Sequence record: NC_030884.1
Length of the DNA stretch: 32,995 nucleotides
Reading direction: 5' to 3' (one strand)
Part shown: piece after piece, positions 155-31,411 of the stretch
How the letters are laid out: each line of letters begins with the position of its first letter
How positions within the stretch are numbered: position 1 is the first letter of the stretch
Notes under the pieces: generated by a model
What the model saw: only the letters and a program-made list of their open reading frames with translations
Told to the model about the DNA's origin: nothing
Databases searched by the model: none
Position numbers and translations under genes: made by a program

Positions 155-160
155 CACCAA

Positions 161-1584: not shown

Positions 1585-1875
1585 ATGAATTACAAAGAAT
1601 TAGAAAAAATGTTAGATGTAATATTTGAAAATTCCGAAATAAAAGAAATAGATTTATTTTTTGATCCTGAGGTCGAAATTTCAAAGCAAGAGTTTGAAGA
1701 TCTTGTGAAAAATGCAGACCCTCTTCAAAAAGTTGTTGGAGACAATTATATAACAGAAACTTTTGAATGGTGGGAATTTGAAAATCAATACTTAGAGTTT
1801 GAACTTGATTATTATGTCAAAGATGAGAAAATATTTGTTTTAGAAATGCATTTTTGGAGGAAAATTAGAAAGTAA
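1585..1875 (+). CDS. acrID1: Anti-CRISPR AcrID1 (type I-D Cas10d inhibitor)
   Basis: Matches my recollection of the characterised AcrID1 (MNYKELEKMLDVIFENSEIKEIDLFFDPEVEISKQEFEDLVKNADPLQKVVGDNY...EMHFWRKIRK); acidic, 96 aa. Confidence 0.92.
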   Translation: MNYKELEKMLDVIFENSEIKEIDLFFDPEVEISKQEFEDLVKNADPLQKVVGDNYITETFEWWEFENQYLEFELDYYVKDEKIFVLEMHFWRKIRK

Positions 1876-2068
1876 TCCTATTTTTTTAATTTTTTAATTT
1901 CATTTTAATTTTCTCTTTTTCTTTTTCTTCTTACTAACTAAAACTATGAACTATTTTTTTCAAAATTGTAATATTATTCCAGTTAGTTGAAAAAATGGAG
2001 AGATGAAATGATAAATAAAAATTTAAAAATGTCATAATCTAAAAGAAAATATAGAGGTGAGAAAAAGT

Positions 2069-2377
2069 ATGAATAAAGATATGGAAGAAGTAATAGATAC
2101 AGTTCAAAGATTAATACAAGAAAATATAATCGGTGAGAAAGTTGTCAGTTTTGAAAATTCAATAGACTTACACATTCAAGAATTCGAATGGGTGATAGAA
2201 GTTTTAATTTATGCAGATGTTAAACATTACTGGTTTACTATCGGGCGTGAAAAAAAGAGATATGATATATTTATTTTTGATAATACTAGAGAATTAAAAC
2301 GAATTATTATTGAAAGTCATTTTAATGTTGAAAGAATTTTTATTGATTCAATACAATTAATTAGATATCCAAGATAA
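2069..2377 (+). CDS. Distant AcrID1-like protein (102 aa from ATG 2069)
   Basis: GTG at 2057 lies within the SD GAGGTGA; SFENSIDLHIQEFEWVI resembles FDPEVEISKQEFEDLV; GTC-type promoter at 2022..2037. Confidence 0.6.
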   Translation: MNKDMEEVIDTVQRLIQENIIGEKVVSFENSIDLHIQEFEWVIEVLIYADVKHYWFTIGREKKRYDIFIFDNTRELKRIIIESHFNVERIFIDSIQLIRYPR

Positions 2378-2405
2378 TTTTGTTTTTTTCTTTTTTTCTA
2401 ATTAG

Positions 2406-2504
2406 CTAATTCTATCTTTAATTTTTTTCAAGTTTGGAATGATAATTCTATTTTTTAGCAATTTCCTAGAATGAAAATTTAAAATTGTCATAGTTTTATC
2501 GAAA
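2406..2504 (+). repeat. 99-bp direct repeat copy 1 (promoter block; copy 2 at 3834..3932)
   Basis: 96/99 identical by manual alignment; ends in TTTAAAATTGTCATAGTTTTATCGAAA. Confidence 0.9.
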
Positions 2505-2520
2505 TTTATTAGTGAGAAAT

Positions 2521-2862
2521 ATGGGCTATCAAGATATTCCAAATGAAATAATTAAACTAAGCGAAAAATATGTGAAAATTGTCGGAGAAAGAAAAAATAT
2601 ATTTAAAACTTTAAGAAGAAAAAGTATCGAAAAAAAGATAATAGAAAAATTTGAAAAATTTTGTGATATAATTCCATTATATATACTTGAAAATATACTT
2701 AAACCAAATAATGTTTTTGAATATAGTTTCGAAAAAAGTTATAAAAACAAAAGTGAGAAAATTGAAGTTATTACTAAAGCTAGACTAAAATTTAAATATG
2801 AAAATTATGAATTAAAATTATTAAGTGTTAAATTTGAAAAATCAATTAATCTAATTTCATAA
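2521..2862 (+). CDS. Basic 113-aa hypothetical protein, possibly a very distant AcrID1-fold member
   Basis: ATG 2521 after SD GTGAG; C-terminus RLKFKYENYELKLLSVKFEK resembles RLFFEKRNNMLKLTKIELEK of the 30584 ORF. Confidence 0.6.
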   Translation: MGYQDIPNEIIKLSEKYVKIVGERKNIFKTLRRKSIEKKIIEKFEKFCDIIPLYILENILKPNNVFEYSFEKSYKNKSEKIEVITKARLKFKYENYELKLLSVKFEKSINLIS

Positions 2863-2920
2863 TTTTTTTATTAGGAATACTATTTCTAAAAGTTAAAAAA
2901 TCAGAGAGATGAAAAAATAG

Positions 2921-2960
2921 AGAGATAGAGATGTAAAAAGATAGAGAAAGCTTTATATAG
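2921..2960 (+). promoter_or_regulatory. Class A promoter
   Basis: AGAGATAGAGATGTAAAAAGATAGAGAAAGCTTTATATAG. Confidence 0.75.
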
Positions 2961-2993
2961 TAGTTTGACAAATATAATATTGAGGTAAGAAAG

Positions 2994-3389
2994 ATGAGTC
3001 AAGAAATCGAATTTCCCGTAAATATAAATTTAGAAAGTCAAGAAGAAAAAATTCAACCGCAAGTCAAGAAGTTATACAAATTTTTTAATTACGTGAGTAA
3101 CTACCATAATGGGAAAATTGATACTATGACGACTCAAAGTTACCTATATTTATTCGTTAGAGACGGTGCCATTAAGGTTGATTATGATGGCGAAATTTCA
3201 ATAGAGACGACGGGTCTAAATATTTCAATTTGGGTCAATAGAGTAGAAAAAGAAGTAGAAATTAACGGTAATGCTAATGGATACGAGTTTAATATACAAT
3301 TTACCGGAAAAGTAAAAGTAAGGACAGAAGAAAATAGACTTGTATTGACGTTAAAGCCTGAGACAATTCCTCAAATTACAACTCATTAA
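2994..3389 (+). CDS. 131-aa beta-rich hypothetical protein, candidate anti-defence gene
   Basis: SD GAGGT, class A promoter, own T-rich terminator; no recognised motif. Confidence 0.75.
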   Translation: MSQEIEFPVNINLESQEEKIQPQVKKLYKFFNYVSNYHNGKIDTMTTQSYLYLFVRDGAIKVDYDGEISIETTGLNISIWVNRVEKEVEINGNANGYEFNIQFTGKVKVRTEENRLVLTLKPETIPQITTH

Positions 3390-3536
3390 TCATTTTTTAT
3401 TTTCTTTTTTTATTTTCTATTATTTTCTTCTTTTTTATGTTTTTTGTTTTTCTATAATTAGCCAATTCTCTCGATTGTTTTTTTCAAGTTTGTGATACTA
3501 ATTCAAGAGGTTGAAAATATAGAGACATAAAAAGTT

Positions 3537-3580
3537 AGAGAGATACAAACGTAAAAAGATAGAGAAAACTTTAAATATTA
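3537..3580 (+). promoter_or_regulatory. Class A promoter
   Basis: AGAGAGATACAAACGTAAAAAGATAGAGAAAACTTTAAATATTA. Confidence 0.75.
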
Positions 3581-3833: not shown

Positions 3834-3932
3834 CTAATTCTATCTTTAATTTTTCTCAAGTTCGGAATAATAATTCTATTTTTTAGCAATTTCCTAGAAT
3901 GAAAATTTAAAATTGTCATAGTTTTATCGAAA
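3834..3932 (+). repeat. 99-bp direct repeat copy 2
   Basis: 96/99 identical to 2406..2504. Confidence 0.9.
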
Positions 3933-3948: not shown

Positions 3949-4266
3949 ATGGAATTTGAAGATTTAGATGTAGTTCTATATGTATTTTTTGAAAATCAAG
4001 AAATGAAAAGTTTTGAATTTGAATTTAAAGAATTATTTGAAATTACTGAAAATGGATTAAGATATCTTGTAGGAGTTCCAGATTCAAGAAATAAAATCAA
4101 GAGTAATAGCGAAATTATTGAAGAATTTATATATTATCAGAATGATAATATTGTTATTAAGTTGACATTTTATTATACTAAAGACACGAATAAAATTTAT
4201 ATAAGAAAAATTTACGGTTGGAGAGAGAAAAGATCAGAATCTGAGAATGAAGAAGACAATATTTAA
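3949..4266 (+). CDS. AcrID1-family paralog (105 aa)
   Basis: MEFEDLDVVLYVFFENQEMK..FEITENGLRYLV..FYYTKDTNKIYIRKIYGWR aligns with AcrID1 start, middle and end. Confidence 0.8.
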   Translation: MEFEDLDVVLYVFFENQEMKSFEFEFKELFEITENGLRYLVGVPDSRNKIKSNSEIIEEFIYYQNDNIVIKLTFYYTKDTNKIYIRKIYGWREKRSESENEEDNI

Positions 4267-6859: not shown

Positions 6860-6882
6860 TTATGACATTTTTATATCTTTTT
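6860..6882 (-). promoter_or_regulatory. GTC-type promoter of svtR, embedded in the rep 3' end
   Basis: AAAAAGATATAAAAATGTCATAA identical to 7665..7687 and 10093..10115. Confidence 0.75.
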
Positions 6883-7219
6883 TTGTCTTTATCATATATT
6901 TATATACATTTTTTATATCACTTATATTTTTTGGAATTAATTCGATTCTTATATCAGTATGAGGAGGCATATGTTTGTGAACTCTAGAATAATCCAGTTT
7001 TTTATTCGTGAAAACTAAAATATGATAATGAAGACCATTTGAATTTTTTGTGGTTTCCTTTATAGAAAATACATGTGAATTTTTGTCATGATTATAAATA
7101 TAACTACGAAATTTTTTAAAAATTTTTTCAGTATCTCCATATTTATAATTAGTTGCAATAGTAATGAAATAAGTATAAGTATAAGAAAAATGAAAATTTA
7201 AAACTTTTTTCAAATCCAC
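6860..7219 (-). CDS. rep: HUH-family Rep endonuclease (119 aa from GTG 7219)
   Basis: Motif 1 FITI, motif 2 LHYHIL, motif 3 YKYMIK; matches recalled SIRV ORF119; the 192-aa track call is an over-extension. Confidence 0.9.
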   Translation of the reverse strand: MDLKKVLNFHFSYTYTYFITIATNYKYGDTEKIFKKFRSYIYNHDKNSHVFSIKETTKNSNGLHYHILVFTNKKLDYSRVHKHMPPHTDIRIELIPKNISDIKNVYKYMIKTKKDIKMS

Positions 7220-7320
7220 AATATTACGTGCGGAAATGACGTTTAAAAACTTATGTCGACAGAAAGGCGAAAGGTTTAAAAATGTATAATCACAAATTTT
7301 TATAAGCGAGGTGGCTAGAG

Positions 7321-7587
7321 ATCCAGCGTAGAAAGTATATATGCCTAAGAGTTCCAAGTGAAGTAAAACAAATTTTTTACGAAAAAAGAGAAGAGATAAA
7401 AAAACAATTAGATGATATTTTAGAAGGAAAAAGAACACTAGAAATTAAAGAAACTGCAGATTTATATGATGAAAAAGTATTCTTTACAGTAGATATGTTA
7501 TATTATGCGAAATTGCAAGAATTATCAAAAAAATATAAAAAACCATTATCGAAAATAATCAGATCTGTATTCTTTAATCTAAGTTAA
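7321..7587 (+). CDS. Cryptic tandem RHH-like protein (~88 aa) lacking a canonical start codon
   Basis: Stop-free frame 7306..7587: IQRRKYICLRVPSEVKQIFYEKREEIKKQLDDILEG..EKVFFTVDMLYYAKLQELSKKYKKPLSKIIRSVFFNLS; SD-like GAGGTG 7308..7313; T-rich tract after stop. Confidence 0.6.
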   Translation: MQRRKYICLRVPSEVKQIFYEKREEIKKQLDDILEGKRTLEIKETADLYDEKVFFTVDMLYYAKLQELSKKYKKPLSKIIRSVFFNLS

Positions 7588-7612
7588 ATCTTTTTTTTCT
7601 TTTTCTTTTTTA
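7588..7612 (+). terminator. T-rich terminator after the cryptic RHH ORF
   Basis: ATCTTTTTTTTCTTTTTCTTTTTT immediately after TAA 7587. Confidence 0.6.
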
Positions 7613-7664
7613 TTTCTCATATTATATATTGGAAATTCTATATTTCTCTTCATATTATGAAATT

Positions 7665-7687
7665 AAAAAGATATAAAAATGTCATAA
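7665..7687 (+). promoter_or_regulatory. GTC-type promoter of the SSB-ATPase-nuclease operon
   Basis: TATA-like ATATAAAAAT followed by GTC, the rudiviral promoter trinucleotide as recalled from SIRV transcription work. Confidence 0.75.
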
Positions 7688-7714
7688 TTAAAAGATATTT
7701 TTAGAGGGAGAAAC

Positions 7715-8110
7715 ATGGCGTCCCTTAAACAAATACTGGATGAATTAGGAAAACAAGCTAAAGAACAAAACAAGATAGCTAGTAGAATTTTAAAGATAAA
7801 GGGAATAAAAAGAATTGTTGTACAATTAAATGCGGTTCCACAGAATGGTTCAATAAGATATTCAATGACAATCCATAGTCAAAACAATTTCAGGAAACAA
7901 ATTGGAATAACGCCACAAGACGCAGAAGATTTAAAATTGATTGCAGAGTTTCTAGAGAAATATGCAGACTTTCTTAATGAATATGTAAAGTTTACTCCAA
8001 GGAATAATAGCACAGTTCAAGAAGAAGAACTAGACATGGAGCAACAAGAAGAAAAAGAAGAAAAACCTAGTACGAAAAGCAGAAAGAAGAACGTAGAGGA
8101 GGAGTTTTAA
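7715..8110 (+). CDS. Single-stranded DNA-binding protein (SIRV ORF131 family)
   Basis: Matches recalled SIRV2 gp17 family; acidic low-complexity C-tail ending VEEEF typical of SSB partner-binding tails; first gene of the operon. Confidence 0.8.
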   Translation: MASLKQILDELGKQAKEQNKIASRILKIKGIKRIVVQLNAVPQNGSIRYSMTIHSQNNFRKQIGITPQDAEDLKLIAEFLEKYADFLNEYVKFTPRNNSTVQEEELDMEQQEEKEEKPSTKSRKKNVEEEF

Positions 8111-8135
8111 AACGTCATAAAGTCATTTTTTTTTC

Positions 8136-9458
8136 ATGAATGAAACTACACAACAGAATCTTCAATTATTTGAAAAGTTAAAAAGTCATTCTTTTTTTTA
8201 TAATCCAAGAGATAATGAAAGAATTTTAAGTCTAATTCTTGGCGAAAAACAAGTTGAAGAAAATAAGAAAATTGAGATTTTGAAAGCTTACAAGAGAGGA
8301 ATTGATTCTCAATATTTTAGTGCTAATTTGCCATATTATAACGAAATAAAATTTATAAGTAAAATTACTGGATTTAAAGTTAAAGATGATCTAGTAATTG
8401 CAAAATTTCAAAATGGTTTTACTGGAGATTTTGATCCACATGAAATTGCTGATAATCCAGATGATTTTTATAATCTTATTTCTTCATATATGTTTGTAAA
8501 GATCAAAAAAGGATCAGAAAACTGGTTTATTGATGAAATATTTTCTATAGAACCGCCTAATAATTTTGAAATTGCAAAAGAAATTCTAGAAGAAGCTGAT
8601 AAACAACATTTAACTTATGCTATTCTATTGCAAGCTTTTGGATATGATTCACAAAAGATGGATTCAGATGATATTTTCTTAACTTTACCACGATTATTCC
8701 CACTTTTCAAATCTCCAATTACTAAAAGACAGATAAACACAATAGAAATTTCAAATAGAGGTACTGGAAAAACTACAACATTTATGATTTTACAAGAAGT
8801 TTTCAATTTTCGTTATTATACAGAACCTCCAACTTATGCAAATTTGATCTATGATGCTAGAAATAATATGTACGGTTCAGTATTTTTATCAAACGGATTA
8901 ATTTTTGACGAAATACAAACTTGGAAAGATGGATATGCAGTTAAAGAATTAAATTCTATAAATTCTACATTATCTACTGGAATTGAAAATTGCATTTGGA
9001 CAAGAGGAGCAGGTACAGAAAGTAAATCTGCTACAATTCAAAAATGTATTCCAATTATTTATGCTGGAAATCCTTTCTCTTTAACTTTAGATAAATATCA
9101 AACTCCAGATATAGAATCATATTTACAACAATATGAAATTTTTACGCCGGCAATTTTAGATAGAATTCATATTATTCAATTAGCAATTAAGAAAACTTAT
9201 GATAAAATAATAAATGCTAGAGTTCTTTATCCTTCAATTCTAAGAGCATTAGTGGAATTAATTCAGGAAAAAATTAACAGAACTACAAATTATGCGGACT
9301 GTGGAAATCTAGAAAGTAGAAGAAAAGAACAATCTATAGATATTCAAATACTTTTACAAGCTTTAGATATAGATTTGCAAATTGGAAAAGTTTCAAATGA
9401 AGAAGTATGTAATAAAATTGTAAATCTAATGAGATTTAGCAATTTAGGAGGATGGTGA
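8136..9458 (+). CDS. AAA+/P-loop ATPase (SIRV ORF436/440; annealing/helicase-like)
   Basis: Walker A SNRGTGKT, Walker B LIFDE, sensor AGNP, arginine-finger-like ILDRI. Confidence 0.88.
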
Positions 9459-10075
9459 AAATGAATTATGAAGATCATATAAAAGAAAGTTTTAAAGTTA
9501 AATATCCTAGTGATACAATTTTTCCAAGTGAAGTTGGTATTTGTTATAGAAAAAGCTATCTTGCTAGAAATATTGAATTTGAGAGAGGAATAAATGAAAT
9601 TTATCTTGATCTAGGAGAACAATATCATGAGAGAATTGAACAATATTTTAAAGAAAAATTGAATTGTCAAACTGAAGTTGAAATTAAAGATGAAGTTGAG
9701 GGAATGAAAATTAGCGGTAGAATTGATATAATTTGTAATAATGACTTATTGGAAATTAAAACAATTAGTTATAATTATTTCCAAGTAAAAGAATATCATT
9801 TATACCAAGTCGCATTATATTATCATATTTTGAAAAAGCAAAATTATCAAATCAATAATGTATATATTATATATTTAAATAGAAACACTAGAGAAGTTAA
9901 GCAATTTAAAATTGATGAAAAAGTTTTAGAAAATTATTATCAAAAAGTTATTGAATGGATAAAGAAATTTAAAGAATATCTAAAAGAAACAGATTATAAA
10001 AAAGTTCCAGGAGTTAATAATTATATCTGTAAATCTTGTGAGTTTAAGCAAAAATGCATTATATCACTTTTTTAA
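9452..10075 (+). CDS. Cas4-like RecB-family nuclease
   Basis: [31 protein letters not shown] and C-terminal [10 protein letters not shown] Fe-S cysteines. Confidence 0.92.
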
Positions 10076-10092
10076 TGAAAAAATAGAAGAGT

Positions 10093-10115
10093 AAAAAGAT
10101 ATAAAAATGTCATAA
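10093..10115 (+). promoter_or_regulatory. GTC-type promoter of the ORF81-RHH operon
   Basis: Identical 23-mer AAAAAGATATAAAAATGTCATAA. Confidence 0.75.
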
Positions 10116-10138
10116 TATAAAATGTAAAAATAGAGAAC

Positions 10139-10384
10139 ATGAGTCAAGTAGAAGAAGTCATAAAAAGTTTAAATAAAAAAGATATAAAAGATATAATAAC
10201 TAAAAATATTAATTTTTTAGTAGAACCACAAATTCTATTTTATGCAAAAAAGAGAAATAGGATAGTAGGATATCTAGAAATCAATAATAAACATTATCGT
10301 TTTGAATTGATATTTAGCAAAGATAATAGCGTAAGTATAACAGTTGGAGAAATAATAGTTTTCGGGAGCAGTGATTTGAAATGA
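10139..10384 (+). CDS. Conserved rudiviral hypothetical protein (81 aa)
   Basis: Own promoter; stop overlaps the next start (ATGA). Confidence 0.75.
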   Translation: MSQVEEVIKSLNKKDIKDIITKNINFLVEPQILFYAKKRNRIVGYLEINNKHYRFELIFSKDNSVSITVGEIIVFGSSDLK

Positions 10385-10560
10385 TGAAGATTGTCACATT
10401 TAAAATTCCAGATGAAATGTTACTATTACTAGAGGCTTATGCTATGAAACATAAGATGAACAGGTCAGAAGTAATAAGGTTAGCAATAGAGAAATTAGTA
10501 GTAGACGAAATGAAAAATGAACCAGTTCCAAAAGCTAAAGTTGAAAAAATAAAGTTATGA
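10381..10560 (+). CDS. 59-aa ribbon-helix-helix (CopG-like) regulator
   Basis: Not in ORF track; MMKIVTFKIPDEMLLLLEAYAMKHKMNRSEVIRLAIEKLV is a classic RHH; ATGA coupling with upstream ORF. Confidence 0.88.
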   Translation: MMKIVTFKIPDEMLLLLEAYAMKHKMNRSEVIRLAIEKLVVDEMKNEPVPKAKVEKIKL

Positions 10561-10609
10561 AAAGTGCATAAAATATCCATAAAAAATAAGATATTATTTT
10601 TTTGATTTT

Positions 10610-11086: not shown

Positions 11087-11092
11087 CTTTTC

Positions 11093-11404: not shown

Positions 11405-11523
11405 ATTTTAGTTAGAACAATATGACAATTTAATAGTTTTTCGTATTCTATGATATAGTCTATGATATAATATATAATCTCCGAAATTATTTTCATATTA
11501 TTTTTTGCAAATGTTAAACGTGA

Positions 11524-11543
11524 TATACATAATATTATGTATA
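11524..11543. promoter_or_regulatory. Perfect 20-bp palindrome upstream of the capsid gene
   Basis: TATACATAATATTATGTATA, flanked by ACGTGA direct repeats. Confidence 0.7.
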
Positions 11544-11592
11544 AGACGTGAAAATTTATTAATTTCAAATCATTAATTGTAATTGACCAAAT

Positions 11593-11997: not shown

Positions 11998-12027
11998 AAT
12001 ATTTAAGCTATTTTTTTCTTTTTTTCT

Positions 12028-20807: not shown

Positions 20808-22505
20808 ATGCCTTTGCCATACAAGATGAGTTACAAATTACCGTTAGAATATCTATCATTACAAGACTGGAACAACTTTGTTCAGAATTTAATATTTATA
20901 AATCAATACGGTACAGCTAAATTATTACAATATTATCAAAATGGTAATTTTCAAAATCTAAAAGATGTATTTGCAAAATATTTATATGTAGCACAATTGA
21001 AAGTTAATGGATATAATGTATTATATAATTTGGCAAAACCACTAGCGTATACTTTTGGAAATGTTTTTCAAGAACTCGCAAATAGACCTACCGTCGAATT
21101 ATCTGAAGTTATTGTTCCGCCTCCTTCACTTAGCTATAATATAAATTATAAATTACCAACTATAAAAAAGCAAATAGAAGTATTAATTCCTAATTTAATT
21201 TCTAAAATTGTAATTCCTAACGTCATAGCCGGCACACAATTTATATTTTCTGGAAATTCGAATTTAGCACAACTAACATCTCAATATTTACAATCTGGAT
21301 ATCTTCAAACTTGGAGAAGTATAACATTACAAAATTTAGGAAATAATTCAATTCAAATAAATAATTCGATTTATTTAATGCCTAAACAATGTTTGAAAAT
21401 TACAGTTTCAAATCCGCAAGAAGTACAAATTTCAGCACAAAATCCTACTTTGGTAAGTGAATTAATTGAATTTGGTGCAATACTAATTACTGCTTATACA
21501 ATTACAATTACAAATTCTCAACCTGATCCAACTTCAAGTCCATTTCAACAATTGCTAATTTTGAATTTATCAAACATAATTTCTAGTCCTTCACAATTAC
21601 TTAATTTACAATTTTGCTTAGATTCTCAGTGTCAAACGCCATTATATGCTTGGATTGAAAGTTATAATTCCAATTTATCAAACGTTTATATCTGGATTAA
21701 TTTACCAATTTCAATTCCCGCAAATTCTTCAATTACAATTTATATGTTTGTAAGAAATTCAATTCAATATCCTTATACTGGACTGAGATCGGATTTATCT
21801 CAGACTTATGCACAATATGATAATGGAAAAAATGTATTCTTAATTTATTTTAACGGAAATGAACCATTATCAAATTTTGATACTTTTGGAAATACAATTC
21901 AACAAATTTCTACAACTGGGCCATTAGGAAATCAAATAAATGCAATATATTTATCTGGATATTCAAATAATGTTGGATTTGTTTATATTGGAAAAAGTGT
22001 ACCAAATCAACCAGTAATTGCAGAATCTTCAACAATAGACCTAGGAAATCAAGCTGGAGGATTAGGAGCTAATAACGGTATGGCGGGAATTGCAGATAAT
22101 ACAAATACATCTTCTATAAATGCAATTGGAGTAACTATGGGATATAGTAACTCATATTTTTCTCAATCATATTATATAAATGGCAGTGAAACTAATGATT
22201 TAAATCAACAAGGTAGTGCAGTTTCACAGTGGGTTTATGCATGGGTTTATTATTACGGATCTTCAGCTAGTTCATGGTATGGATGTATAGCTCCACAATT
22301 CTATAGTTCTGCCGGCGGATATTGTGGAACAGTTAATAATAACCCACTTTCTAGTTCTACACAATTATATTTAAGTGCTATTGGTTCTGTTAGCTCAGGC
22401 TTTTGGTGGCAAACAGCTTGGAATTTCATGAGAATGAGGACTTATCCGCCTAACGGCGTAATGCCGTCTAACACAAATCCTCAATTAACTGCAATTTATA
22501 GTTAG
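20808..22505 (+). CDS. Minor virion protein (SIRV ORF562/564 family) with DUF2341-like/lectin-like C-terminal domain
   Basis: PFQQLLILNL..PLYAWIESYN..IWINLP.SIPANSSITIYM resembles DUF2341; ATG 20808 or 20826 more plausible than TTG 20793. Confidence 0.75.
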   Translation: MPLPYKMSYKLPLEYLSLQDWNNFVQNLIFINQYGTAKLLQYYQNGNFQNLKDVFAKYLYVAQLKVNGYNVLYNLAKPLAYTFGNVFQELANRPTVELSEVIVPPPSLSYNINYKLPTIKKQIEVLIPNLISKIVIPNVIAGTQFIFSGNSNLAQLTSQYLQSGYLQTWRSITLQNLGNNSIQINNSIYLMPKQCLKITVSNPQEVQISAQNPTLVSELIEFGAILITAYTITITNSQPDPTSSPFQQLLILNLSNIISSPSQLLNLQFCLDSQCQTPLYAWIESYNSNLSNVYIWINLPISIPANSSITIYMFVRNSIQYPYTGLRSDLSQTYAQYDNGKNVFLIYFNGNEPLSNFDTFGNTIQQISTTGPLGNQINAIYLSGYSNNVGFVYIGKSVPNQPVIAESSTIDLGNQAGGLGANNGMAGIADNTNTSSINAIGVTMGYSNSYFSQSYYINGSETNDLNQQGSAVSQWVYAWVYYYGSSASSWYGCIAPQFYSSAGGYCGTVNNNPLSSSTQLYLSAIGSVSSGFWWQTAWNFMRMRTYPPNGVMPSNTNPQLTAIYS

Positions 22506-22514
22506 TGATCTAGA

Positions 22515-24464
22515 ATGTCTTCTAATCTAGTTACTACTAGTTCATCAACTCAATCATTAACTCAATCATCAAATCAATATTCATATCCAATATCAACTTG
22601 TTATCCAATTACTTCATTTAGTAAATTACTGAATAAAATAGCGAAACAATCTTTAATTTCTTCACAACTTTGGAATGAAATAGTTCAAGATCTTTATACT
22701 GCATACTCAGTTTACAAATATATAAATACTTCATTTCAATATCTATTACAATATCAATTTTCATATGGAAATATATATACTCTTTATGATTTATTTAAAG
22801 ATATGTATTTTTATATTTCAAATTTAAAGCCATATCCATTTATTCCATTAATTCAAGCTAGACCTGGACTGCCTTTAACTATAGAATATATGAATAATTT
22901 AATAAAAGCAATTATAAAATTAGCAAATGAAAATAATATAGCATTAGCAAAATCTTTAAACTTTGTTCAGCCTAATGAAATTGTTAAATCTAGAAAATTT
23001 AACGATATCATATACACAGTTAAACAATTCCTAACTTTTGATTTTAATACTTATTTTCTATTAGATTGTTATGGTTCAATATTCAGTAATTTAGTAAATT
23101 CAAAATCGGCATTTTTAAATGTATTAATTTATAATCTTCAATATCCTATTAATGCTAATAATACATATATCAAAAATTTGATTATATATCAATTAGATAA
23201 TACTATATATCTTAATGGTTATTCAATTATTAATGATTTTCTAATTGGAACAAATAATGGAACTATTGTTTTAAATGATAACGCAATTATAGAAAATTTA
23301 ATATGTAGACAAAATTATGGAGAAATATTGATAAATGGAAATGCAATTATAATAAATAATAAATGTTTTACAGCATTATTTTCAACTACACTTCAACAAA
23401 CACTTCCAGATTCCATTTCCTTAAATGCTAGATACTTCTTACCTCCGAATAAAATAGTATTTCAATTAACTCCAGGAAGCACAGGTGATTACGCAGTATT
23501 AATAAATCCAGATGGTTCTGTTTCTGTATTACCTGATAATACTACGATAAATTCCAATACAGATTACAGTAATATAACCGGTTATTCTACGGTACCTGGT
23601 CTTATTGCATTTGGAGGCGGAGAAGAAGCTTATAATCCTTGGTCTCCATGTGCGGAACCATGTTCACCATATGTCGCATTTTACAATACTTCAACTCAAC
23701 AATTGTCAATTTTCAAAATTCCTGGTGGAAGTTGTGATAATATGAATACTTCATCAATTGTTAAAGGTAATAGTAATGATATAATAGCAATAGGTGGCGC
23801 TAACCCAGGATCTTTAACTGGTGGAACTGGATATGTAATTTTTAACTCATCATTATCACCATATTTATATGGAACATTTGCACTTACAGATTCAGCTGGT
23901 AATTCGTTATATTTATATAGAATGCCCAAAATAACTGTTGGAAACAATCTTTATTTAATAGCTGGAATTAATAATTCTAATACTATTGCAATAGAATATG
24001 TTCCATTACAACTTCTATATACCAACGGGCATAGTTATGCTAATGTATTATGTAACAGTGAAACTATAACTCCAAATTATATAACAACTATTACAAATGA
24101 TTTTAACTATGAAGGAATATTATCTATATATACAGACGGTACAAATATTTATTTTGTATATTATTCAACTAATGGATATGTAAAATTAGTAATATTTGAC
24201 ACATTCACGAATACTGTCATATCTATTAAACAATTAATTCAATTATCAAATAATAGTTCAACTTTTACTATCGCTAACGGATACGTATATGTATCCGTAC
24301 AACAAACGAATTCATTTACTGTATATAAATTTGATTTAAATGGAAATTTAATAACATCAAAAAGTTTTACAGGAACTGGATTTATAGATATGAATGGATA
24401 TATAGTACAGTTTACAAATGGACTAAATGCAGGTTCTAAAATTTTAGTTTATCCGCCGTTCTAA
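22515..24464 (+). CDS. 649-aa probable virion/receptor-binding protein (helical N-terminus, beta-helix-like repeats, beta-rich C-terminus)
   Basis: Operonic with the upstream structural gene; Asn/Ser/Thr/Tyr-rich with many N-x-S/T sequons. Confidence 0.7.
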   Translation: MSSNLVTTSSSTQSLTQSSNQYSYPISTCYPITSFSKLLNKIAKQSLISSQLWNEIVQDLYTAYSVYKYINTSFQYLLQYQFSYGNIYTLYDLFKDMYFYISNLKPYPFIPLIQARPGLPLTIEYMNNLIKAIIKLANENNIALAKSLNFVQPNEIVKSRKFNDIIYTVKQFLTFDFNTYFLLDCYGSIFSNLVNSKSAFLNVLIYNLQYPINANNTYIKNLIIYQLDNTIYLNGYSIINDFLIGTNNGTIVLNDNAIIENLICRQNYGEILINGNAIIINNKCFTALFSTTLQQTLPDSISLNARYFLPPNKIVFQLTPGSTGDYAVLINPDGSVSVLPDNTTINSNTDYSNITGYSTVPGLIAFGGGEEAYNPWSPCAEPCSPYVAFYNTSTQQLSIFKIPGGSCDNMNTSSIVKGNSNDIIAIGGANPGSLTGGTGYVIFNSSLSPYLYGTFALTDSAGNSLYLYRMPKITVGNNLYLIAGINNSNTIAIEYVPLQLLYTNGHSYANVLCNSETITPNYITTITNDFNYEGILSIYTDGTNIYFVYYSTNGYVKLVIFDTFTNTVISIKQLIQLSNNSSTFTIANGYVYVSVQQTNSFTVYKFDLNGNLITSKSFTGTGFIDMNGYIVQFTNGLNAGSKILVYPPF

Positions 24465-24941
24465 TCATAATTTACAAAATACAAATTCTCTATTATCATC
24501 AGTTATAAAAGTTAGAATTGTTCCATATAATTTTCTCAACAAATCAAATCTATTCTCTGTCCAATCATGAATTGCTATACAATATTGTTTGTACTTTTGT
24601 AATTTAGAAAAATCTAGATTTTTTTCGCAACCTTCACAATCCATAATGAAAATATCACTGTCAGGATATTCGTTACTTTTCCATTCCTCATGAATTTCAA
24701 CTTTATCACAAATCTTGAATTCTTTACAAATTTTTTCTTTAAAAATTTGATTTAGTTTCTCTTCTTTTTCAAATCCAATTATCTTTTTAGCACCTTTTAA
24801 AAGAAAATATAAAGCAGAACTACCACAGTCATTACCAATTATTGTAATTGTTTTATCTTTAACATCTAATTTTGAATAAGCATATTCGAATTCTCTCCAA
24901 TAACAACACTGTAATTTACAAAAATAATCATCAAAATTCAT
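24465..24941 (-). CDS. SAM-dependent methyltransferase (FkbM-like)
   Basis: Motif I ITIIGNDCGSSALYF, acidic GFEKE, IMDCEGCE (FkbM-type xDxEGxE). Confidence 0.8.
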   Translation of the reverse strand: MNFDDYFCKLQCCYWREFEYAYSKLDVKDKTITIIGNDCGSSALYFLLKGAKKIIGFEKEEKLNQIFKEKICKEFKICDKVEIHEEWKSNEYPDSDIFIMDCEGCEKNLDFSKLQKYKQYCIAIHDWTENRFDLLRKLYGTILTFITDDNREFVFCKL

Positions 24942-25771
24942 GTTTGAACTACCTCAAATAGAGCATAAACTTTACATTTTCCAGTTGCCCAAGCGTAAAC
25001 ATTAGCTGGATTTCTAACATGAAATTCTAAACTATCACCGGGCAAGATTGGAAAACTGTTGTACAATTGATTACCAATATAAACTACATAATTACTCAAA
25101 TTCTGGAGAATTATCCTAACAGTTTCTAATGTTGAACCGCTATAAAGTGGAGAAGGAACTGTCGATAAATTAATTTGTAAACCTTCTATAGTTGGAGGAG
25201 ATAAATATAATGTTAATTTATTTAAAGTATTAGCTAATCCGACAGTAGCTAAATAGAAATATGTAAATGTATAAGCTACAAAATCTGCAATTTGATAAAG
25301 TGTAATTGTTGTAGATTTTTGTAATTGTTTAACTTGTGAAACTAAAGAATAAAATAAATCAGAAACAGATTTATAAATTAAATCTGAAATAGTTCTATAT
25401 AAATTTGTATATAAATCATATGAAATTTGTTTTGGTAATTTAGAAATAGAATAATAAAGTTGTTGATTTGAATATAGAATTTGATTTATTTGTTGATTTG
25501 CAGTTGAGATAAATCCAGCTATATAAATTGGATCTTGTTCTGTAAGAACTGGTTGACCAGAAACATAGACTTCATTTTTGAAAAATCCAGCTAATGCATT
25601 TACGCTATTCGGGATATATAAATTTCCATTTTGTAGAATTGAAGTTAATGAATTTCCACCGGTTTCATAGAGTTGATATAGAAGTAATGTAGCAGTGTTC
25701 CACATGCTAGAAGTTAGTCTTTGGAATGGACTAGCTAAAAGTGAAGAAATTGAAGTATAAGTTACACTCAT
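24938..25771 (-). CDS. 277-aa hypothetical, probable virion-associated protein
   Basis: Shares LTSSMWN and ILQNL..NP modules with the 20808 and 22515 proteins; ATGA-coupled to the methyltransferase. Confidence 0.72.
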   Translation of the reverse strand: MSVTYTSISSLLASPFQRLTSSMWNTATLLLYQLYETGGNSLTSILQNGNLYIPNSVNALAGFFKNEVYVSGQPVLTEQDPIYIAGFISTANQQINQILYSNQQLYYSISKLPKQISYDLYTNLYRTISDLIYKSVSDLFYSLVSQVKQLQKSTTITLYQIADFVAYTFTYFYLATVGLANTLNKLTLYLSPPTIEGLQINLSTVPSPLYSGSTLETVRIILQNLSNYVVYIGNQLYNSFPILPGDSLEFHVRNPANVYAWATGKCKVYALFEVVQT

Positions 25772-25878
25772 ACAATTTTAATAAGTAATTGACTAAAATA
25801 AAGTGTCACATCTTATAATTCATATAATAAATATAATGTATATAGTTTGTTCTCATTTAGATCATTTAAAATTAAAAT

Positions 25879-26508
25879 ATGTCATATTGTTTAGAAATTA
25901 TTATGAAAATTTTCACTTTTGTTGGATTTACAAAACATTTAGATGAACTAGATTTTGATTACGTAGTAGTCGATAAAACTTTTAATGATATAACTGAAGA
26001 ACAAATTAAGAAATATCAAGAAAAAATAATTTGGAACGAAACGAATACGGATATTAGATGGTTAAGAATTGCAAAACAATTATTAACAATTGTAAATTTT
26101 GCAAAAAATATAGAAGATGATATAATTGCAATTATTGATAGTGATTTAATTATACCAAATTTGAGACAAATTATTCCAAATGAAAGAATTTTTATTCCTT
26201 GCTATTGGCTTTATTATTCCTGGGCAAATGAAATTAGACCATTTTGCAGTGGTACAAATTATATTTTCAGAAAATCATTATTACCATATTTGGAATATAC
26301 AATAAATACATATATAGAAAATGAATATTATAAAGAAATACCAGTTGACATATTTATTCATAATTTTGTTCCGCATATGAACATATTAAAATTAGGAACT
26401 ATTCATTATGTAAAAACTCCAGATAGAGAAATAAAAATGGAATTTAGATATGAAGATATTCCACAAATTTTCAAACATATTCCTGAATTTGTACTTTTGA
26501 TAGGTTGA
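25879..26508 (+). CDS. Glycosyltransferase, GT-A-like (start 25879 or 25903)
   Basis: AIIDSDLII DxD motif; operonic with the GT4 gene. Confidence 0.75.
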   Translation: MSYCLEIIMKIFTFVGFTKHLDELDFDYVVVDKTFNDITEEQIKKYQEKIIWNETNTDIRWLRIAKQLLTIVNFAKNIEDDIIAIIDSDLIIPNLRQIIPNERIFIPCYWLYYSWANEIRPFCSGTNYIFRKSLLPYLEYTINTYIENEYYKEIPVDIFIHNFVPHMNILKLGTIHYVKTPDREIKMEFRYEDIPQIFKHIPEFVLLIG

Positions 26509-27586: not shown

Positions 27587-27859
27587 TTAACTAGATCTCC
27601 AAAAATCAATTTCAACAATATAAACTTTACTGTCTTTCACATAATAATTAATTATTGAATTAATATTTTTTCTATATTCACAAATATCAGTTCTTATATT
27701 TCTATCATCATATCTATGCAATAAATCGGCATCTTTAACAATCTCTTCAAATTGGTCATATGAAGCTATTACTTCTTTATTAAATCTTAAATTTATTCTT
27801 ATTATTGTCGAATCTTGGAAAAATTTATCAATAATCGATTTTAATTCTTCAAATTCCAT
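27587..27859 (-). CDS. AcrID1-family paralog (90 aa from ATG 27859)
   Basis: MEFEELKSIIDKFFQDSTI..FEEIVKDAD..NYYVKDSKVYIVEIDFWR. Confidence 0.85.
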   Translation of the reverse strand: MEFEELKSIIDKFFQDSTIIRINLRFNKEVIASYDQFEEIVKDADLLHRYDDRNIRTDICEYRKNINSIINYYVKDSKVYIVEIDFWRSS

Positions 27860-27871: not shown

Positions 27872-28159
27872 TTATCTTTTTTCACGAAATAGATCAATTT
27901 CTAAGATATTTATAAAACCATCTTCTTTAAAATAATGAATAATAAGCTTAACTACTTTGTTTGATAATTCATAATATACAAATTCATCTGAAGTTATCCA
28001 GGGATCCTTATCTATAAAAGATAGATTTGGTCTCCTTACTAATTCGTTATATTCATTTTCTGTAAGTATTAAAGATCTCTTAAACGCTAAAGTTAACTCA
28101 TCAAGATTTTTTTCTTTGAAGAACATGTCTATAATTCGTTTAACTTTCTTTAAATTCAT
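27872..28159 (-). CDS. AcrID1-family paralog (95 aa)
   Basis: MNLKKVKRIIDMFFKEKNLDELTLAF..LTENEYNELV..HYFKEDGFINILEIDLFR. Confidence 0.82.
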   Translation of the reverse strand: MNLKKVKRIIDMFFKEKNLDELTLAFKRSLILTENEYNELVRRPNLSFIDKDPWITSDEFVYYELSNKVVKLIIHYFKEDGFINILEIDLFREKR

Positions 28160-28198: not shown

Positions 28199-28471
28199 TT
28201 AAACTTCACGCCACATCTTAATTTCTTTTACATAAGCTATATCATCAATCTCTTCATATTTAAATAAGAATTTCGTGAACTCATTTTGTTCAAATTCAAC
28301 TGTAAAAATTGCATTTTTTACAGATGTATTTACGAATTTTTTATCTTTTGTCAACTCATAAAATTCATCACCTGATAATTCAATTGAATCATTAGTTTTA
28401 ATTATGATTTCCTTTATTTCAGCATTTTTTGAAAATATATTAACAAGTTCTTTTAATTCTTTAAATTTCAT
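28199..28471 (-). CDS. AcrID1-family paralog (90 aa)
   Basis: MKFKELKELVNIFSKNAEIKEI..ELSGDEFYELTK..YVKEIKMWR; GTC-type promoter at 28506..28521(-). Confidence 0.85.
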   Translation of the reverse strand: MKFKELKELVNIFSKNAEIKEIIIKTNDSIELSGDEFYELTKDKKFVNTSVKNAIFTVEFEQNEFTKFLFKYEEIDDIAYVKEIKMWREV

Positions 28472-28620
28472 TTACCTATTCACCACCTTCAAAAATCTAA
28501 AAGAATTATGACATTTTTAAATCTTTATTTTTTGGAATAAGTAGGATTAATATTTGGAATTTGAGAAAAATTATCGATAGAATTAGGTAATTAGGAGAAA
28601 AGAAAAAATTTAAAAAAAGA

Positions 28621-28923: not shown

Positions 28924-28954
28924 TTTTCTTTCACCAATATACATTATGTAAAAA

Positions 28955-28994
28955 CTCATATATAAAGCTTTCTCTCAATTTTTACGTTTATAGC
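28955..28994 (-). promoter_or_regulatory. Class A promoter
   Basis: Minus strand AAACGTAAAAATTGAGAGAAAGCTTTATATATGAG. Confidence 0.72.
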
Positions 28995-29151: not shown

Positions 29152-29601
29152 TTAACTTGATAACAAATATGCTAATAAGACAAGAACATCAGTAGGAACA
29201 TTAACGCCTGTGATATCTTTTATCGCATTTAGTAATGAAGATAATCCTTTTATATCTATTTGGCTTTTGCTTGTATCGACTAATAAATTTCCGCTGATAT
29301 CATCTGCTACATTCAGTAAATCGAAATTGACAACTTCATAATCACTTAGAAATATTGGTGGACTTATAGGAATGAAGGAAAATAGTAAATTCCCCTTTTT
29401 ATCGCTCCATAACTTTAGTATTACTTTTTTTGATAACGGAACATAAAACACATCCTTATTGATTGCTTTCTTGATGATATATTGGTATACGCCGAAATGT
29501 GTCTTTATCACAAGCAATGATAGTCTACTACTATCAAGACTATCGTCATTACTGAAAAAATAATATGCTTTAACTTTTTTTTCGACTTGTGCTTTTTCCA
29601 T
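29152..29601 (-). CDS. 149-aa candidate anti-CRISPR (locus syntenic with SIRV2 acrIIIB1)
   Basis: ATG 29601 after SD GGTGA; class A promoter; lies just downstream of pvap, where I recall acrIIIB1 in SIRV2; homology not verified. Confidence 0.55.
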   Translation of the reverse strand: MEKAQVEKKVKAYYFFSNDDSLDSSRLSLLVIKTHFGVYQYIIKKAINKDVFYVPLSKKVILKLWSDKKGNLLFSFIPISPPIFLSDYEVVNFDLLNVADDISGNLLVDTSKSQIDIKGLSSLLNAIKDITGVNVPTDVLVLLAYLLSS

Positions 29602-29630
29602 CCTTTTCACCAATACTATATATGTAAAAA

Positions 29631-29670
29631 CTAGTATATAAAGTTTTCTCTAATCTTTTACATCTCTATT
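29631..29670 (-). promoter_or_regulatory. Class A promoter
   Basis: Minus strand AGAGATGTAAAAGATTAGAGAAAACTTTATATACTAG. Confidence 0.72.
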
Positions 29671-29748
29671 TTTCATCTTCAAAACTTGAAAAATATGCAA
29701 AAATAAAATATAAAAAAGACTAAAAAAATAATACCTTAAAAATTAAAA

Positions 29749-30045
29749 TTATTTAGCTTGCGTATTTGGATTTTGATCTTTTGCTTTTTCTCTAGCTAAT
29801 GAATTTACATCTCTTAAAGTATCCATATTCAATAATGCATTTATTCCAGTTACTGTCGTGTCCTTAATTGATTCAATAGCAATAACTGTACTTTTTGACA
29901 TTTGATCAACAGCTTTAGCAAAATTCTCATTTGACTGCTTTTCATTATATAAGTGTACTATTTCTCCAATTACGAAACTACCAATTAACACTCCTGTTAC
30001 TGCAAAAAATCCATATAGTGCTCCTTCTAATAATGTTATCGCCAT
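29749..30045 (-). CDS. pvap: Virus-associated pyramid protein PVAP/P98 (egress)
   Basis: MAITLLEGALYGFFAVTGVLIGSF..NENFAKAVDQMSKST..AREKAKDQNP matches recalled SIRV2 P98. Confidence 0.95.
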   Translation of the reverse strand: MAITLLEGALYGFFAVTGVLIGSFVIGEIVHLYNEKQSNENFAKAVDQMSKSTVIAIESIKDTTVTGINALLNMDTLRDVNSLAREKAKDQNPNTQAK

Positions 30046-30148
30046 TTTTGGTCAAATAATATTATCAAGAACTAAATAATATAGTTTTCTGTAAATTTAA
30101 AAAAATAAAGAATTTTTCAGAAAGATAGATAATGAAATTAGAAAAGAT

Positions 30149-30403
30149 TCACAATTTTTTAGTACGCACTATTTGAATTTCATATAATAAATCTTTTTCA
30201 TTATCTGTTAACTCCATAGTATTAATTCTTATCTCAATATTATCGTTTAAAGGATAAATAAATTGACTAAATGCTAATTCAATTAATTGCCGATAATCTT
30301 CTTCATTAATTTCAAAAGAAATCTTAAATTTTAAACTTAATTCTTGTATATTAGAATCTTCAAAAAACAAATCTATAATTTTTTTAACTTCTTTAAAACT
30401 TAT
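30149..30403 (-). pseudogene. AcrID1-family paralog with ATA at the expected start (pseudogene or non-canonical start)
   Basis: Leader TTGGGGAAAGAAAA identical to that of acrID1 but followed by ATA; (M)SFKEVKKIIDLFFEDSNIQELSL aligns from residue 1. Confidence 0.6.
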
Positions 30404-30583
30404 TTTTCTTTCCCCAATATTTCCATAAAAATATGACAATTTTATATTTTTACATCTTAAATTTTTCTATCTGCAGAATTAGTATCTGGAAAATGAAAAA
30501 AATTCGGCATAGCTTTAGCTAATATTTAGAAAAGAAAAAAACAAACTAAGAATTAAAAAGAAGAAAAAGAAAAAAAGAAAGAC

Positions 30584-30907
30584 TTACTTTTCAAGTTCAA
30601 TTTTAGTCAATTTTAACATATTGTTTCTTTTTTCAAAAAATAATCTTATGTATCTAGTTTCGTGATATATACCAAATACAGTGCCAAAATCATAATCAAA
30701 TCTGAATTCAATCTTATCATTAAAGATATTGATATTATTTGAATTTATCCCGTAATATTCCATAATTTTTTCAACAATTTCTTTAAGCTGTTTTTCGCTA
30801 AATGTCAGTTCTTTTTTCGTTTTTAACACTTTCCTCTGTACGAATTGATCATTTAAAAAATCTCTAACTACTGAAATTATCTTTTGACTTAATTCTTGAC
30901 CATTCAC
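30584..30907 (-). CDS. 107-aa distant AcrID1-like protein
   Basis: GTG start after GAGGGG; ELTFSEKQLKEIV and LFFEKRNNMLKLTKIEL echo AcrID1 segments; class A promoter. Confidence 0.65.
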   Translation of the reverse strand: MNGQELSQKIISVVRDFLNDQFVQRKVLKTKKELTFSEKQLKEIVEKIMEYYGINSNNINIFNDKIEFRFDYDFGTVFGIYHETRYIRLFFEKRNNMLKLTKIELEK

Positions 30908-30930
30908 CTTTTTCCCCTCATTCTTTCATA

Positions 30931-30980
30931 TGTATCTTCTACTATTTAAATCTTTCTCTATTCTTTTATCTTTCTATCTC
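30931..30980 (-). promoter_or_regulatory. Class A promoter
   Basis: Minus strand ATAGAGAAAGATTTAAATAGTAGAAGATACA. Confidence 0.75.
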
Positions 30981-31120
30981 TTTATCTTTTCACCGTCTTG
31001 ATTTTTCAACCTCCTGAATTAGTATCTGAAAAATGAAAAAAATAGTCCATAGTCTTAGATAATAAAGAAAAAATTAAAAAATAAAAATAAGAAAAAAATT
31101 AATGAAATAAAAAAAGAAAA

Positions 31121-31411
31121 TTATAGCTTAATCTCTCTCCACATTTGTAACTCCATTACGTAATATTTCTCATCTTTCTTATAGTAGACCAATAACATTT
31201 TAACGTACCTTTTTCCTTCTTCCCAATATTCGTAAATGTCAGTTATTACACCGTAATCTTCTGTACCAGTTACCAAGGTACCTTGACCGATTAACTGTTT
31301 AAATTCTTCTGGACTAACTTCAACATCTTCCCTAAATCTCAGCTGTAACTCGTCTACTGTACTGTCTTCAAATACTTGATTTACGATTTGATTTAAGACT
31401 TCATACTTCAC
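31121..31411 (-). CDS. AcrID1-family paralog (96 aa)
   Basis: QVFEDSTVDELQLRFREDVEVSPEEFKQLI..YYKKDEKYYVMELQMWR aligns with AcrID1 without gaps. Confidence 0.88.
   Translation of the reverse strand: MKYEVLNQIVNQVFEDSTVDELQLRFREDVEVSPEEFKQLIGQGTLVTGTEDYGVITDIYEYWEEGKRYVKMLLVYYKKDEKYYVMELQMWREIKL

Follow-up and report, generated by a model that had tools for sequence, protein, structure and literature searches.

The window analysed here (NC_030884.1, 32,995 nucleotides, 25% GC) is the complete genome of rod-shaped virus 3 of Sulfolobus islandicus (SIRV3), as it is 100% identical to KX712143. The question it raises is whether ten small open reading frames (ORFs) on its two arms share the fold of the anti-CRISPR protein AcrID1, and what the members other than AcrID1 itself may bind. 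SIRV3 is an archaeal virus, and we take the ten ORFs to sit on the type genome of the AcrID1 family. A sequence-only reading had flagged these ORFs as about nine AcrID1-fold paralogs. All ten were found at the coordinates below and match the deposited SIRV3 annotation, where they are gp02, gp03, gp04, gp07, gp36, gp37, gp38, gp42, gp43 and gp44. We confirmed that the window carries a multigene family on both arms, with a single small alpha/beta fold (AcrID1 or DUF1374) as its scaffold. The family thus stood, and the count came to about ten: seven secure members, gp03 (only probable), and gp43 with gp04 as a divergent basic branch. The best overall explanation, which we consider somewhat probable, is a two-tier family of AcrID1-fold binders whose surfaces have been remodelled and which bind something other than the Cas10d of the host LAL14/1.

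1585..1875, plus strand: gp02, AcrID1, the characterised Cas10d binder (identity to 6EXP/6THH; NCBIfam 111.6 bits)
2069..2377, plus strand: gp03, probable distant family member (weak profile signal)
2521..2862, plus strand: gp04, basic, gp43-like subfamily (hhalign to the gp43 group; isoelectric point (pI) 9.6)
3949..4266, plus strand: gp07, secure member (Pfam 120.5 bits; NCBIfam 97 bits)
27587..27859, minus strand: gp36, secure member, last gene of the gp38-gp37-gp36 unit (Pfam 78.6 bits; NCBIfam 102 bits)
27872..28159, minus strand: gp37, secure member, charge-neutral (Pfam 113.3 bits; NCBIfam 100.5 bits)
28199..28471, minus strand: gp38, secure member, SIRV3-only (Pfam 33 bits; NCBIfam 79 bits)
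30149..30403, minus strand: gp42, secure member, family-aligned start ATA (NCBIfam 54.4 bits, full length)
30584..30907, minus strand: gp43, divergent basic member, AcrID1 fold by model (sub-threshold Pfam and NCBIfam; fold model)
31121..31411, minus strand: gp44, secure member, acidic, mirrors the position of gp02 (Pfam 64.6 bits; NCBIfam 117 bits)

AcrID1 was characterised in SIRV3 and is the founding archaeal anti-CRISPR. Many AcrID1 paralogs of SIRV1, SIRV2 and SIRV3, along with the idea of their functional diversification, have been published previously (PMC11065993), and RefSeq names several of the orthologs "AcrID1 family anti-CRISPR protein". The finding is a correct re-discovery and not a discovery. 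What is added here is a tested list of the SIRV3 members, the subfamily link between gp04 and gp43 with evidence on their fold, the contrast in rate between the two tiers, the insertion history of gp38 and a lead on heterodimers.

Seven ORFs are secure members of the AcrID1 family

We observed that gp02 (ORF 1585-1875) was identical at 96/96 residues to the AcrID1 of PDB entries 6EXP and 6THH; the first is the crystal structure of SIRV3 AcrID1 (gp02) and the second is the same protein complexed with Cas10d. Seven ORFs (gp02, gp07, gp36, gp37, gp38, gp42 and gp44) exceeded the curated cut-offs of both family models, with 33-120 bits against Pfam DUF1374 (PF07118; cut-off 21) and 54-117 bits against NCBIfam AcrID1_fam (NF033952; cut-off 30). 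In all-against-all BLASTP these seven found each other with E-values down to 1e-16 at pairwise identities of 21-37% (gp44 and gp02 being 35% identical), and the sequence pattern shared by them was confirmed to lie far beyond chance.

We further built a hidden Markov model (HMM) of the seven core members and ran it over 324 ORFs of SIRV1, SIRV1-XX, SIRV2 and SIRV3. The known members were found, followed only by a short grey zone of weaker candidates and SIRV2 relatives (SIRV2 gp51, E 4e-4; SIRV2 gp05, 1.5e-3; gp43, 0.013; SIRV2 gp08, 0.022; gp03, 0.047). Noise began at E 0.27, and gp04 lay within it. When iterated, the model took in gp03 and gp43 and converged at 28 proteins. An HMM scan of all ORFs of at least 45 residues in the window found no further members.

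Among the conserved columns of the family alignment, 28/35 were hydrophobic; polar residues were rarely conserved, one of them being the Arg that ends the "FWR" motif. As the conserved columns belong nearly all to the hydrophobic core, the surface is free to vary. The net charges spread widely, from strongly acidic in gp02 (-13, pI 4.4), gp07 (-9) and gp44 (-8) through gp37 (0) to gp43 (+3, pI 9.1) and gp04 (+10, pI 9.6), the last three being without the acidity of AcrID1. The sequence-only reading was borne out on several of these points: its three motifs were seen in the ten-way alignment, the range from strongly acidic to basic was as it had described, and its grading (seven clear members, gp43 and gp03 weaker, gp04 doubtful) was accurate.

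gp43 and gp04 form a divergent basic branch

gp43 scored below the cut-offs and over its N-terminal half only, with 15.2 bits in Pfam (E 0.032) and 15.4 bits in NCBIfam (E 0.018). gp04 and gp03 had no match in the Pfam or NCBIfam libraries, and a Pfam search with the SIRV1 and SIRV2 orthologs of gp03, gp04 and gp43 gave no bridging match; these three are placed as distant relatives, through profile and fold evidence. Against the core-family HMM, none of 1000 shuffles of gp43 reached the score of the protein itself; gp04 showed no direct signal, as 389/1000 of its shuffles reached its score.

When gp04 was compared with the gp43 group, hhalign gave a probability of 97.8% (E 7e-13, 101 columns) and an alignment that was convincing by eye. 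In BLASTP, SIRV2 gp52 found both gp04 (40% identity, E 2e-11) and gp43 (E 4e-10). By these alignments gp04 and gp43 are clear homologs, in a basic subfamily of their own made up of gp43, gp04, SIRV2 gp52 and gp06, and SIRV1 gp02/gp44. This subfamily is small. An exhaustive profile search with the gp43/gp04 alignment found 3 proteins among 1.84 billion, and a word search for homologs of gp03, gp04 and gp43 found 1-3 near relatives each. With so few relatives the folding alignments were shallow, and the models of gp43 and gp03 were of low confidence. A comparison of gp43 with the ESM Atlas gave no feature match and only generic alpha+beta structure matches; the Atlas covers clusters of at least 50 members, so that a small viral family could not show up there.

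The AlphaFold2 model of gp43 (predicted local distance difference test score, pLDDT, 52) was built from an alignment that held gp43/gp04-type sequences only and no sequence of the core family. Among 350,542 PDB chains, its best Foldseek matches were 2H36, 6EXP and 3DF6 (probability 0.99-1.0; template modelling score, TM, 0.44-0.50). VIA-align, a search independent of Foldseek, ranked 2H36 first, 3DF6 third and 6EXP fourth among 48,161 chains (Z 6.7, 6.2 and 6.2, with 92, 89 and 84 residues aligned for 2H36, 3DF6 and 6EXP). As judged from the model, that three specific small viral proteins top the results of two aligners is not chance. We accept on this modelling that gp43 has the AcrID1 fold and, through its sequence homology to gp43, that gp04 would have it as well. 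gp43 has also been listed as an AcrID1-family anti-defence gene (ADG) (PMC11065993).

gp03 is a probable distant member

gp03 matched the seed HMM over its full length with an E-value of 0.047, and its SIRV2 ortholog gp51 did so with 4e-4. In hhalign, gp03 matched the core family with an E-value of 0.012 over 90 columns. When gp03 and its orthologs (n=4) were shuffled, 3, 0, 50 and 39 of 1000 shuffles reached the score against the core HMM, against 144-749 of 1000 for unrelated controls; gp03 itself outscored 997/1000 of its shuffles and the SIRV2 ortholog 1000/1000. The gp03 model (pLDDT 57) has the order alpha-beta-alpha-beta-beta-beta, which agrees with the pattern of the family alignment. 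Judged on these profile signals, gp03 is a probable distant family member. Of the distant members, whose fold the sequence-only reading had named as a check, gp43 recovered it, with its matches to 6EXP, 2H36 and 3DF6 at pLDDT 52; the gp03 model had no family match in Foldseek and mid-list ones in VIA-align.

We also observed that gp03 lies on the left arm (2069-2377), while its SIRV2 ortholog gp51 sits on the right arm (L002 32493-32819). This indicates that accessory cassettes move between the genome arms.

The family genes fall into two regulatory tiers

Promoter classes were drawn from an alignment of the 100 nt 5' of every arm gene together with motif scans. Class A is the published early anti-defence consensus, and we found 7 sites at up to 3 mismatches against 0 expected in the window. 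It lies upstream of gp02, gp43, gp44, both Aca8 genes, gp05, gp06, gp39 and gp40. Of these, gp39 is an AcrIA3 homolog and gp40 is AcrIIIB2. In class B, TGTCATA comes after a TATA box; the scan, allowing up to 2 mismatches, gave 17 sites where 4 were expected. This class lies upstream of gp03, gp04, gp07, gp38 and gp42, and also of many genes of the viral core (sites within 6861-25886), and so looks like the generic viral promoter. The promoters and the two Aca8 genes are as follows.

1523..1549, plus strand: type A promoter of gp02 (exact consensus match)
2022..2036, plus strand: type B promoter of gp03 (exact motif match; upstream alignment)
2478..2492, plus strand: type B promoter of gp04 (exact motif match)
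3906..3920, plus strand: type B promoter of gp07 (exact motif match)
28507..28521, minus strand: type B promoter of gp38-gp37-gp36 (exact motif match)
30432..30446, minus strand: type B promoter of gp42, containing the annotated TTG start (motif scan, upstream alignment)
30943..30969, minus strand: type A promoter of gp43 (3 mismatches)
31447..31473, minus strand: type A promoter of gp44 (exact match)
1193..1360, plus strand: gp01, Aca8-type helix-turn-helix regulator, left copy (annotation; Aca8 in Supplementary Data 1 of PMC11065993)
31633..31803, minus strand: gp45, Aca8, right copy, short 56-residue form (start re-annotated in Supplementary Data 1 of PMC11065993)

The early consensus with an Aca8 gene nearby, which marks the ADG regulon, was found for gp02, gp43 and gp44. 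For gp03, gp04, gp07, gp38-gp37-gp36 and gp42 we found the generic TATA+GTC promoter instead. In Supplementary Data 1 of Bhoobalan-Chitty et al. 2024, the AcrID1-family ADGs of SIRV3 are exactly gp02, gp43 and gp44 (PMC11065993).

gp37 and gp36 follow gp38 after gaps of 39 and 12 nt that contain no TATA box. The region 5' of gp38 is homologous to the region directly 5' of SIRV1 gp38 and SIRV2 gp46, which are orthologs of gp37, and this indicates that gp38 was inserted into an existing gp37-gp36 unit. A run of seven T residues 3' of gp38 might attenuate transcription.

The annotated starts of two early genes on the minus strand, gp39 (28924-28959) and gp45 (31804-31911), lie 5' of or inside their own early promoters. 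The true starts are likely the ATG at 28923 (Met13) for gp39 and the ATG at 31803 for gp45. For gp45, the long ORF of the annotation has the type A promoter within it, and the start at 31803 agrees with the published re-annotation (PMC11065993).

The two tiers diverge at different rates

We compared the SIRV3 genes with SIRV2. The best SIRV2 matches of the tier-1 genes were 55% (gp02), 42% (gp44) and 29% (gp43) identical, with a synonymous divergence (dS) of 1.1-2.3, against 89-96% identity and dS of 0.40-0.72 for core genes. The tier-2 genes with SIRV2 orthologs (n=6) were 60-94% identical with dS of 0.08-0.54; these include gp07 (90% to SIRV2 gp10), gp36 (78% to gp45), gp37 (92% to gp46) and gp42 (94% to gp50). 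By these estimates, tier 2 with SIRV2 orthologs diverges no faster than the core genome. The ratio of nonsynonymous to synonymous divergence (dN/dS) was 0.08 for gp37, 0.20 for gp07, 0.32 for gp36, 0.34 for gp04, 0.32-0.55 for gp42 and 0.64 for gp03, and by these values gp37 and gp07 are evidently subject to purifying selection. gp38 had no ortholog in SIRV1 or SIRV2, the best match being 31%.

The early-promoter genes that were compared (aca8, gp02, gp05, gp39, gp43 and gp44) all had dS of 1.1-2.3 to their best SIRV2 matches. Such saturated values in class A mean either much older lineages or genes swapped in from divergent viruses, and, judged from these sequences, the early regulon seems either to take part in exchange with viruses of greater divergence or to be of much greater age than the core.

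The inverted terminal repeat (1-1629 and 31367-32995) is 98% identical over 1,214 bp and then 75% identical through the Aca8 genes, and it ends about 45 nt (the first 15 codons) into gp02 and gp44. At the DNA level there is also a resemblance (71-75%) between gp02 and both gp42 and gp43 in the promoter-plus-5' segments. The sequence arrangement suggests that the terminal repeat and the gp02-like 5' segments could be recombination substrates for cassette exchange.

We propose that tier 1 (gp02, gp43 and gp44, located by the Aca8 genes under the early promoter) would consist of fast-turnover, front-line anti-defence genes, and that tier 2 (gp03, gp04, gp07, gp38-gp37-gp36 and gp42) would provide stable accessory functions on the general viral schedule.

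gp42 has an unusual start

The family-aligned start of gp42 is ATA (window 30401-30446, minus strand), and it is kept in SIRV1, SIRV1-XX, SIRV2 and SIRV3. Like the ATG of gp02, it stands 43 nt from the TATA box and behind the same GGGG-type leader. The TTG annotated as the start falls within the TATA+GTC promoter, and the upstream frame is broken by stops in SIRV1 and SIRV2.

RNA sequencing from several independent studies was available for the right arm as assembled contigs only, without strand, ends or levels. In two studies the contig depth was 710 and 124 for gp36-38, 3445 and 1353 for gp40-41, and 232-323 and 157 for gp43 and gp44. gp42 had a depth of 11.6 in one study and 0 in the other, against 157-3445 for its neighbours. 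As adjacent contigs differ more than 100-fold in depth, RNA is a likelier source than carry-over of DNA. A single contig of a third library (29485-31251) spans the gp40-to-gp44 stretch and was uninformative, and the raw-read RNA run X23 had no viral reads on the stretch.

It is very improbable that part of the family is decaying or kept in reserve, with copies such as gp42, and possibly gp03, left over from cassette duplication and recombination between the arms, expressed weakly or not at all and now without a function. The ATA at the aligned start with the annotated TTG inside the TATA box, the low contig depths, the dN/dS of gp42 and gp03 and the spontaneous loss of terminal genes in culture (known from the literature) would all fit such decay. 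However, four viruses have retained the 84-codon frame of gp42 together with the ATA and the GGGG-type leader, and at 25% GC an open frame of 84 codons is unlikely without selection; RNA contig depths from unknown time points, moreover, cannot show absence.

In the same right-arm data, the run X4 contig over gp40 (AcrIIIB2; depth ~4,180) has one T more than the window, inserted behind 29574 close to the 5' end of the gene. Either the strain differs there, with a shift of the annotated frame, or the contig was misassembled.

What the paralogs may bind

AcrID1 is an acidic homodimer; it binds Cas10d on every domain and holds it sequestered in a 4:2 ring (PMC7689449). The sequence-only reading had stated correctly that AcrID1 binds Cas10d, gp02 being identical to the protein of 6THH, and that large paralog families occur in rudiviruses, which is a known feature (PMC11065993). 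By the published mechanism, gp02 acts as an acidic homodimer that binds the large subunit of the I-D complex, Cas10d, and sequesters it or blocks the path of the DNA. Basic members presumably cannot work in this way. Manav et al. reported that there is hardly any conservation of the Cas10d contacts even between SIRV2 gp03 and SIRV3 gp02, the two inhibitors proven for I-D; we find these two to be 53-55% identical.

The genetics of SIRV2 bear on this. The deletion mutant SIRV2M, which lacks gp02-09 and gp51-53, is sensitive to I-D targeting and is rescued by SIRV3 gp02 alone. SIRV2M retains gp10, gp45, gp46 and gp50, the orthologs of SIRV3 gp07, gp36, gp37 and gp42; since it is I-D sensitive despite them, these orthologs are insufficient against I-D. 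Against I-A and III-B targeting the mutant remains resistant. The III-B resistance disappears with gp48, and loss of gp45-47 removes the resistance of SIRV2 to I-A, which needs gp47 and gp48 together and not gp45 or gp46. By these results, the retained orthologs (of gp07, gp36, gp37 and gp42) do not suffice for inhibition of I-D, I-A or III-B in the laboratory host, and the tier-2 members would accordingly not be inhibitors of the three CRISPR types of LAL14/1. The SIRV2 deletion mutants grow like the wild type in a CRISPR-null host, except for one that also lacks gp37 (ORF114). With the paralogs dispensable there, their other targets would be absent from that host or redundant in it.

The surfaces could also have varied in pursuit of a single system. 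The paralogs (above all gp44, perhaps gp07) would then be I-D inhibitors tuned to the Cas10d variants of different strains, and the family would widen the range of Sulfolobus/Saccharolobus hosts rather than hit other systems. gp44 mirrors gp02 in position, has the same early promoter, a net charge of -8 and the highest score with the AcrID1 model (117 bits), and SIRV2 gp03 and SIRV3 gp02 both inhibit I-D with few contacts in common. However, SIRV2M is I-D sensitive even with its orthologs of gp07, gp36, gp37 and gp42 in place, the neutral and basic members do not fit an acidic model that blocks the DNA path, and the rate of the tier-2 genes with orthologs is no higher than that of the core, contrary to what an arms-race interface would show. 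We consider this unlikely as an account of the family.

Somewhat less likely still, the tier-2 proteins would not be anti-defence proteins at all, and would be conserved accessory adaptors or regulators that bind a viral or housekeeping host protein and have only their ancestry in common with AcrID1. Their generic TATA+GTC promoter is common to core genes such as those of the single-stranded DNA-binding protein and SvtR, their dS is at or below that of the core, and the dN/dS of gp37, gp07, gp36 and gp04 is low (0.08-0.34). The SIRV2 genetics gave no CRISPR phenotype for their orthologs, and the function of the five SIRV2 homologs without an early promoter is still to be explored (PMC11065993). 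Against this, the tier-2 genes are dispensable for growth in the CRISPR-null host and are absent from the SIRV1-11 core gene set. They are also located among proven anti-CRISPR genes (the AcrIA3 homolog gp39 and AcrIIIB2, gp40).

We return to the two-tier family of re-surfaced binders. The paralogs would be dimeric protein binders in which the hydrophobic core is kept and the exterior re-surfaced, and such proteins would bind something other than the Cas10d of LAL14/1, most likely components of host defence which the laboratory host lacks or has in redundant form. That the diverged members hit different targets, as the sequence-only reading had proposed, is plausible; the variable surfaces and SIRV2M agree with it, and the SIRV2 genetics take away its most obvious candidates in the standard host, I-A and III-B. 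The likeliest carriers of new anti-defence specificities are gp44, gp43 and gp38, and the likeliest carriers of conserved functions are gp37, gp36 and gp07.

Several observations weigh against this explanation. As regards function, gp02 is the only member with a demonstrated target in the literature; gp47 and gp48 of SIRV2 alone account for the inhibition of I-A and III-B of LAL14/1; and all the paralogs are dispensable, with no phenotype attached, in CRISPR-null LAL14/1, which keeps its non-CRISPR systems. As regards the fold, the comparison of the gp43 group with the core in hhalign was noise (E 0.11 against 0.11-0.4 for controls), so that the link of gp43 to the core comes from the model comparison and the single-sequence signals, and the models of gp43 and gp03 have low confidence (pLDDT 52 and 57). 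The Foldseek search with gp03 was topped by designed curved-sheet and NTF2-like proteins at root-mean-square deviations above 12 Å and gave no family match; VIA-align placed 3DF6 at rank 9 (Z 4.2) and 6EXP at rank 43 (Z 3.4), tied in the middle of the list. As regards the rates, the tier-1 dS is saturated and the pairs are maybe not strict orthologs, so that the contrast could reflect replacement of cassettes instead of fast evolution. Finally, gp42 may be silent, given its lack of a canonical start and its very low RNA coverage.

We also evaluated the pairing of gp37 and gp36, two neighbouring and tightly coupled genes that all four icerudiviruses keep as a pair, the founder of the family being an obligate dimer. 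The predicted complex scored 0.71 against 0.00 for the best of 3 controls; the mark of this test is reached by 51/78 solved complexes and 2/108 mismatched pairs. Across the runs the contacts agreed to at least 80% with a partner pLDDT of at least 89, and in the predicted interface, residues 16-30 of the two chains run antiparallel in a symmetric arrangement. As homodimers of the family are solved and the test is also passed by near relatives of true partners, the result shows only that the interfaces are compatible. It is a tentative and rather doubtful proposal that co-made paralogs, above all gp37 and gp36, may pair through this same edge-strand interface into heterodimers. If true, the heterodimers would be a combinatorial set of two-headed adaptors, each of which could link one host protein to a different one.

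Comparison with known systems

The closest known protein is AcrID1 itself (SIRV3 gp02 / SIRV2 gp03; 6EXP, 6THH). gp02 is identical to it, six more ORFs pass both AcrID1_fam and DUF1374, and the fold of gp43 is alike by model comparison. The other SIRV3 members differ from it in being at most 21-37% identical and ranging from acidic to strongly basic, and most of them have no early Aca8-linked promoter.

SIFV0014 (2H36) and AFV1 ORF99 (3DF6/3DJW), both of filamentous viruses, are members of DUF1374 from structural genomics. The gp43 model finds its best structural matches in them (Z 6.7 and 6.2), and 2H36 has sequence similarity to gp02 as well (E 1.6e-4). For these viruses one homolog each is listed (PMC11065993).

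The AcrID1 set of SIRV2 (12 genes, PMC11065993) belongs to the same family, with the same locations on the arms and the same split into early and non-early promoters, as 5/12 of the SIRV2 homologs have no early promoter (PMC11065993). It holds orthologs of SIRV3 gp03, gp04, gp07, gp36, gp37 and gp42. SIRV3 differs in having about ten members, in gp38, which has no SIRV2 ortholog, in the ortholog of gp03, which is on the other arm, and in its tier-1 genes, whose identity to the best SIRV2 match is only 29-55%.

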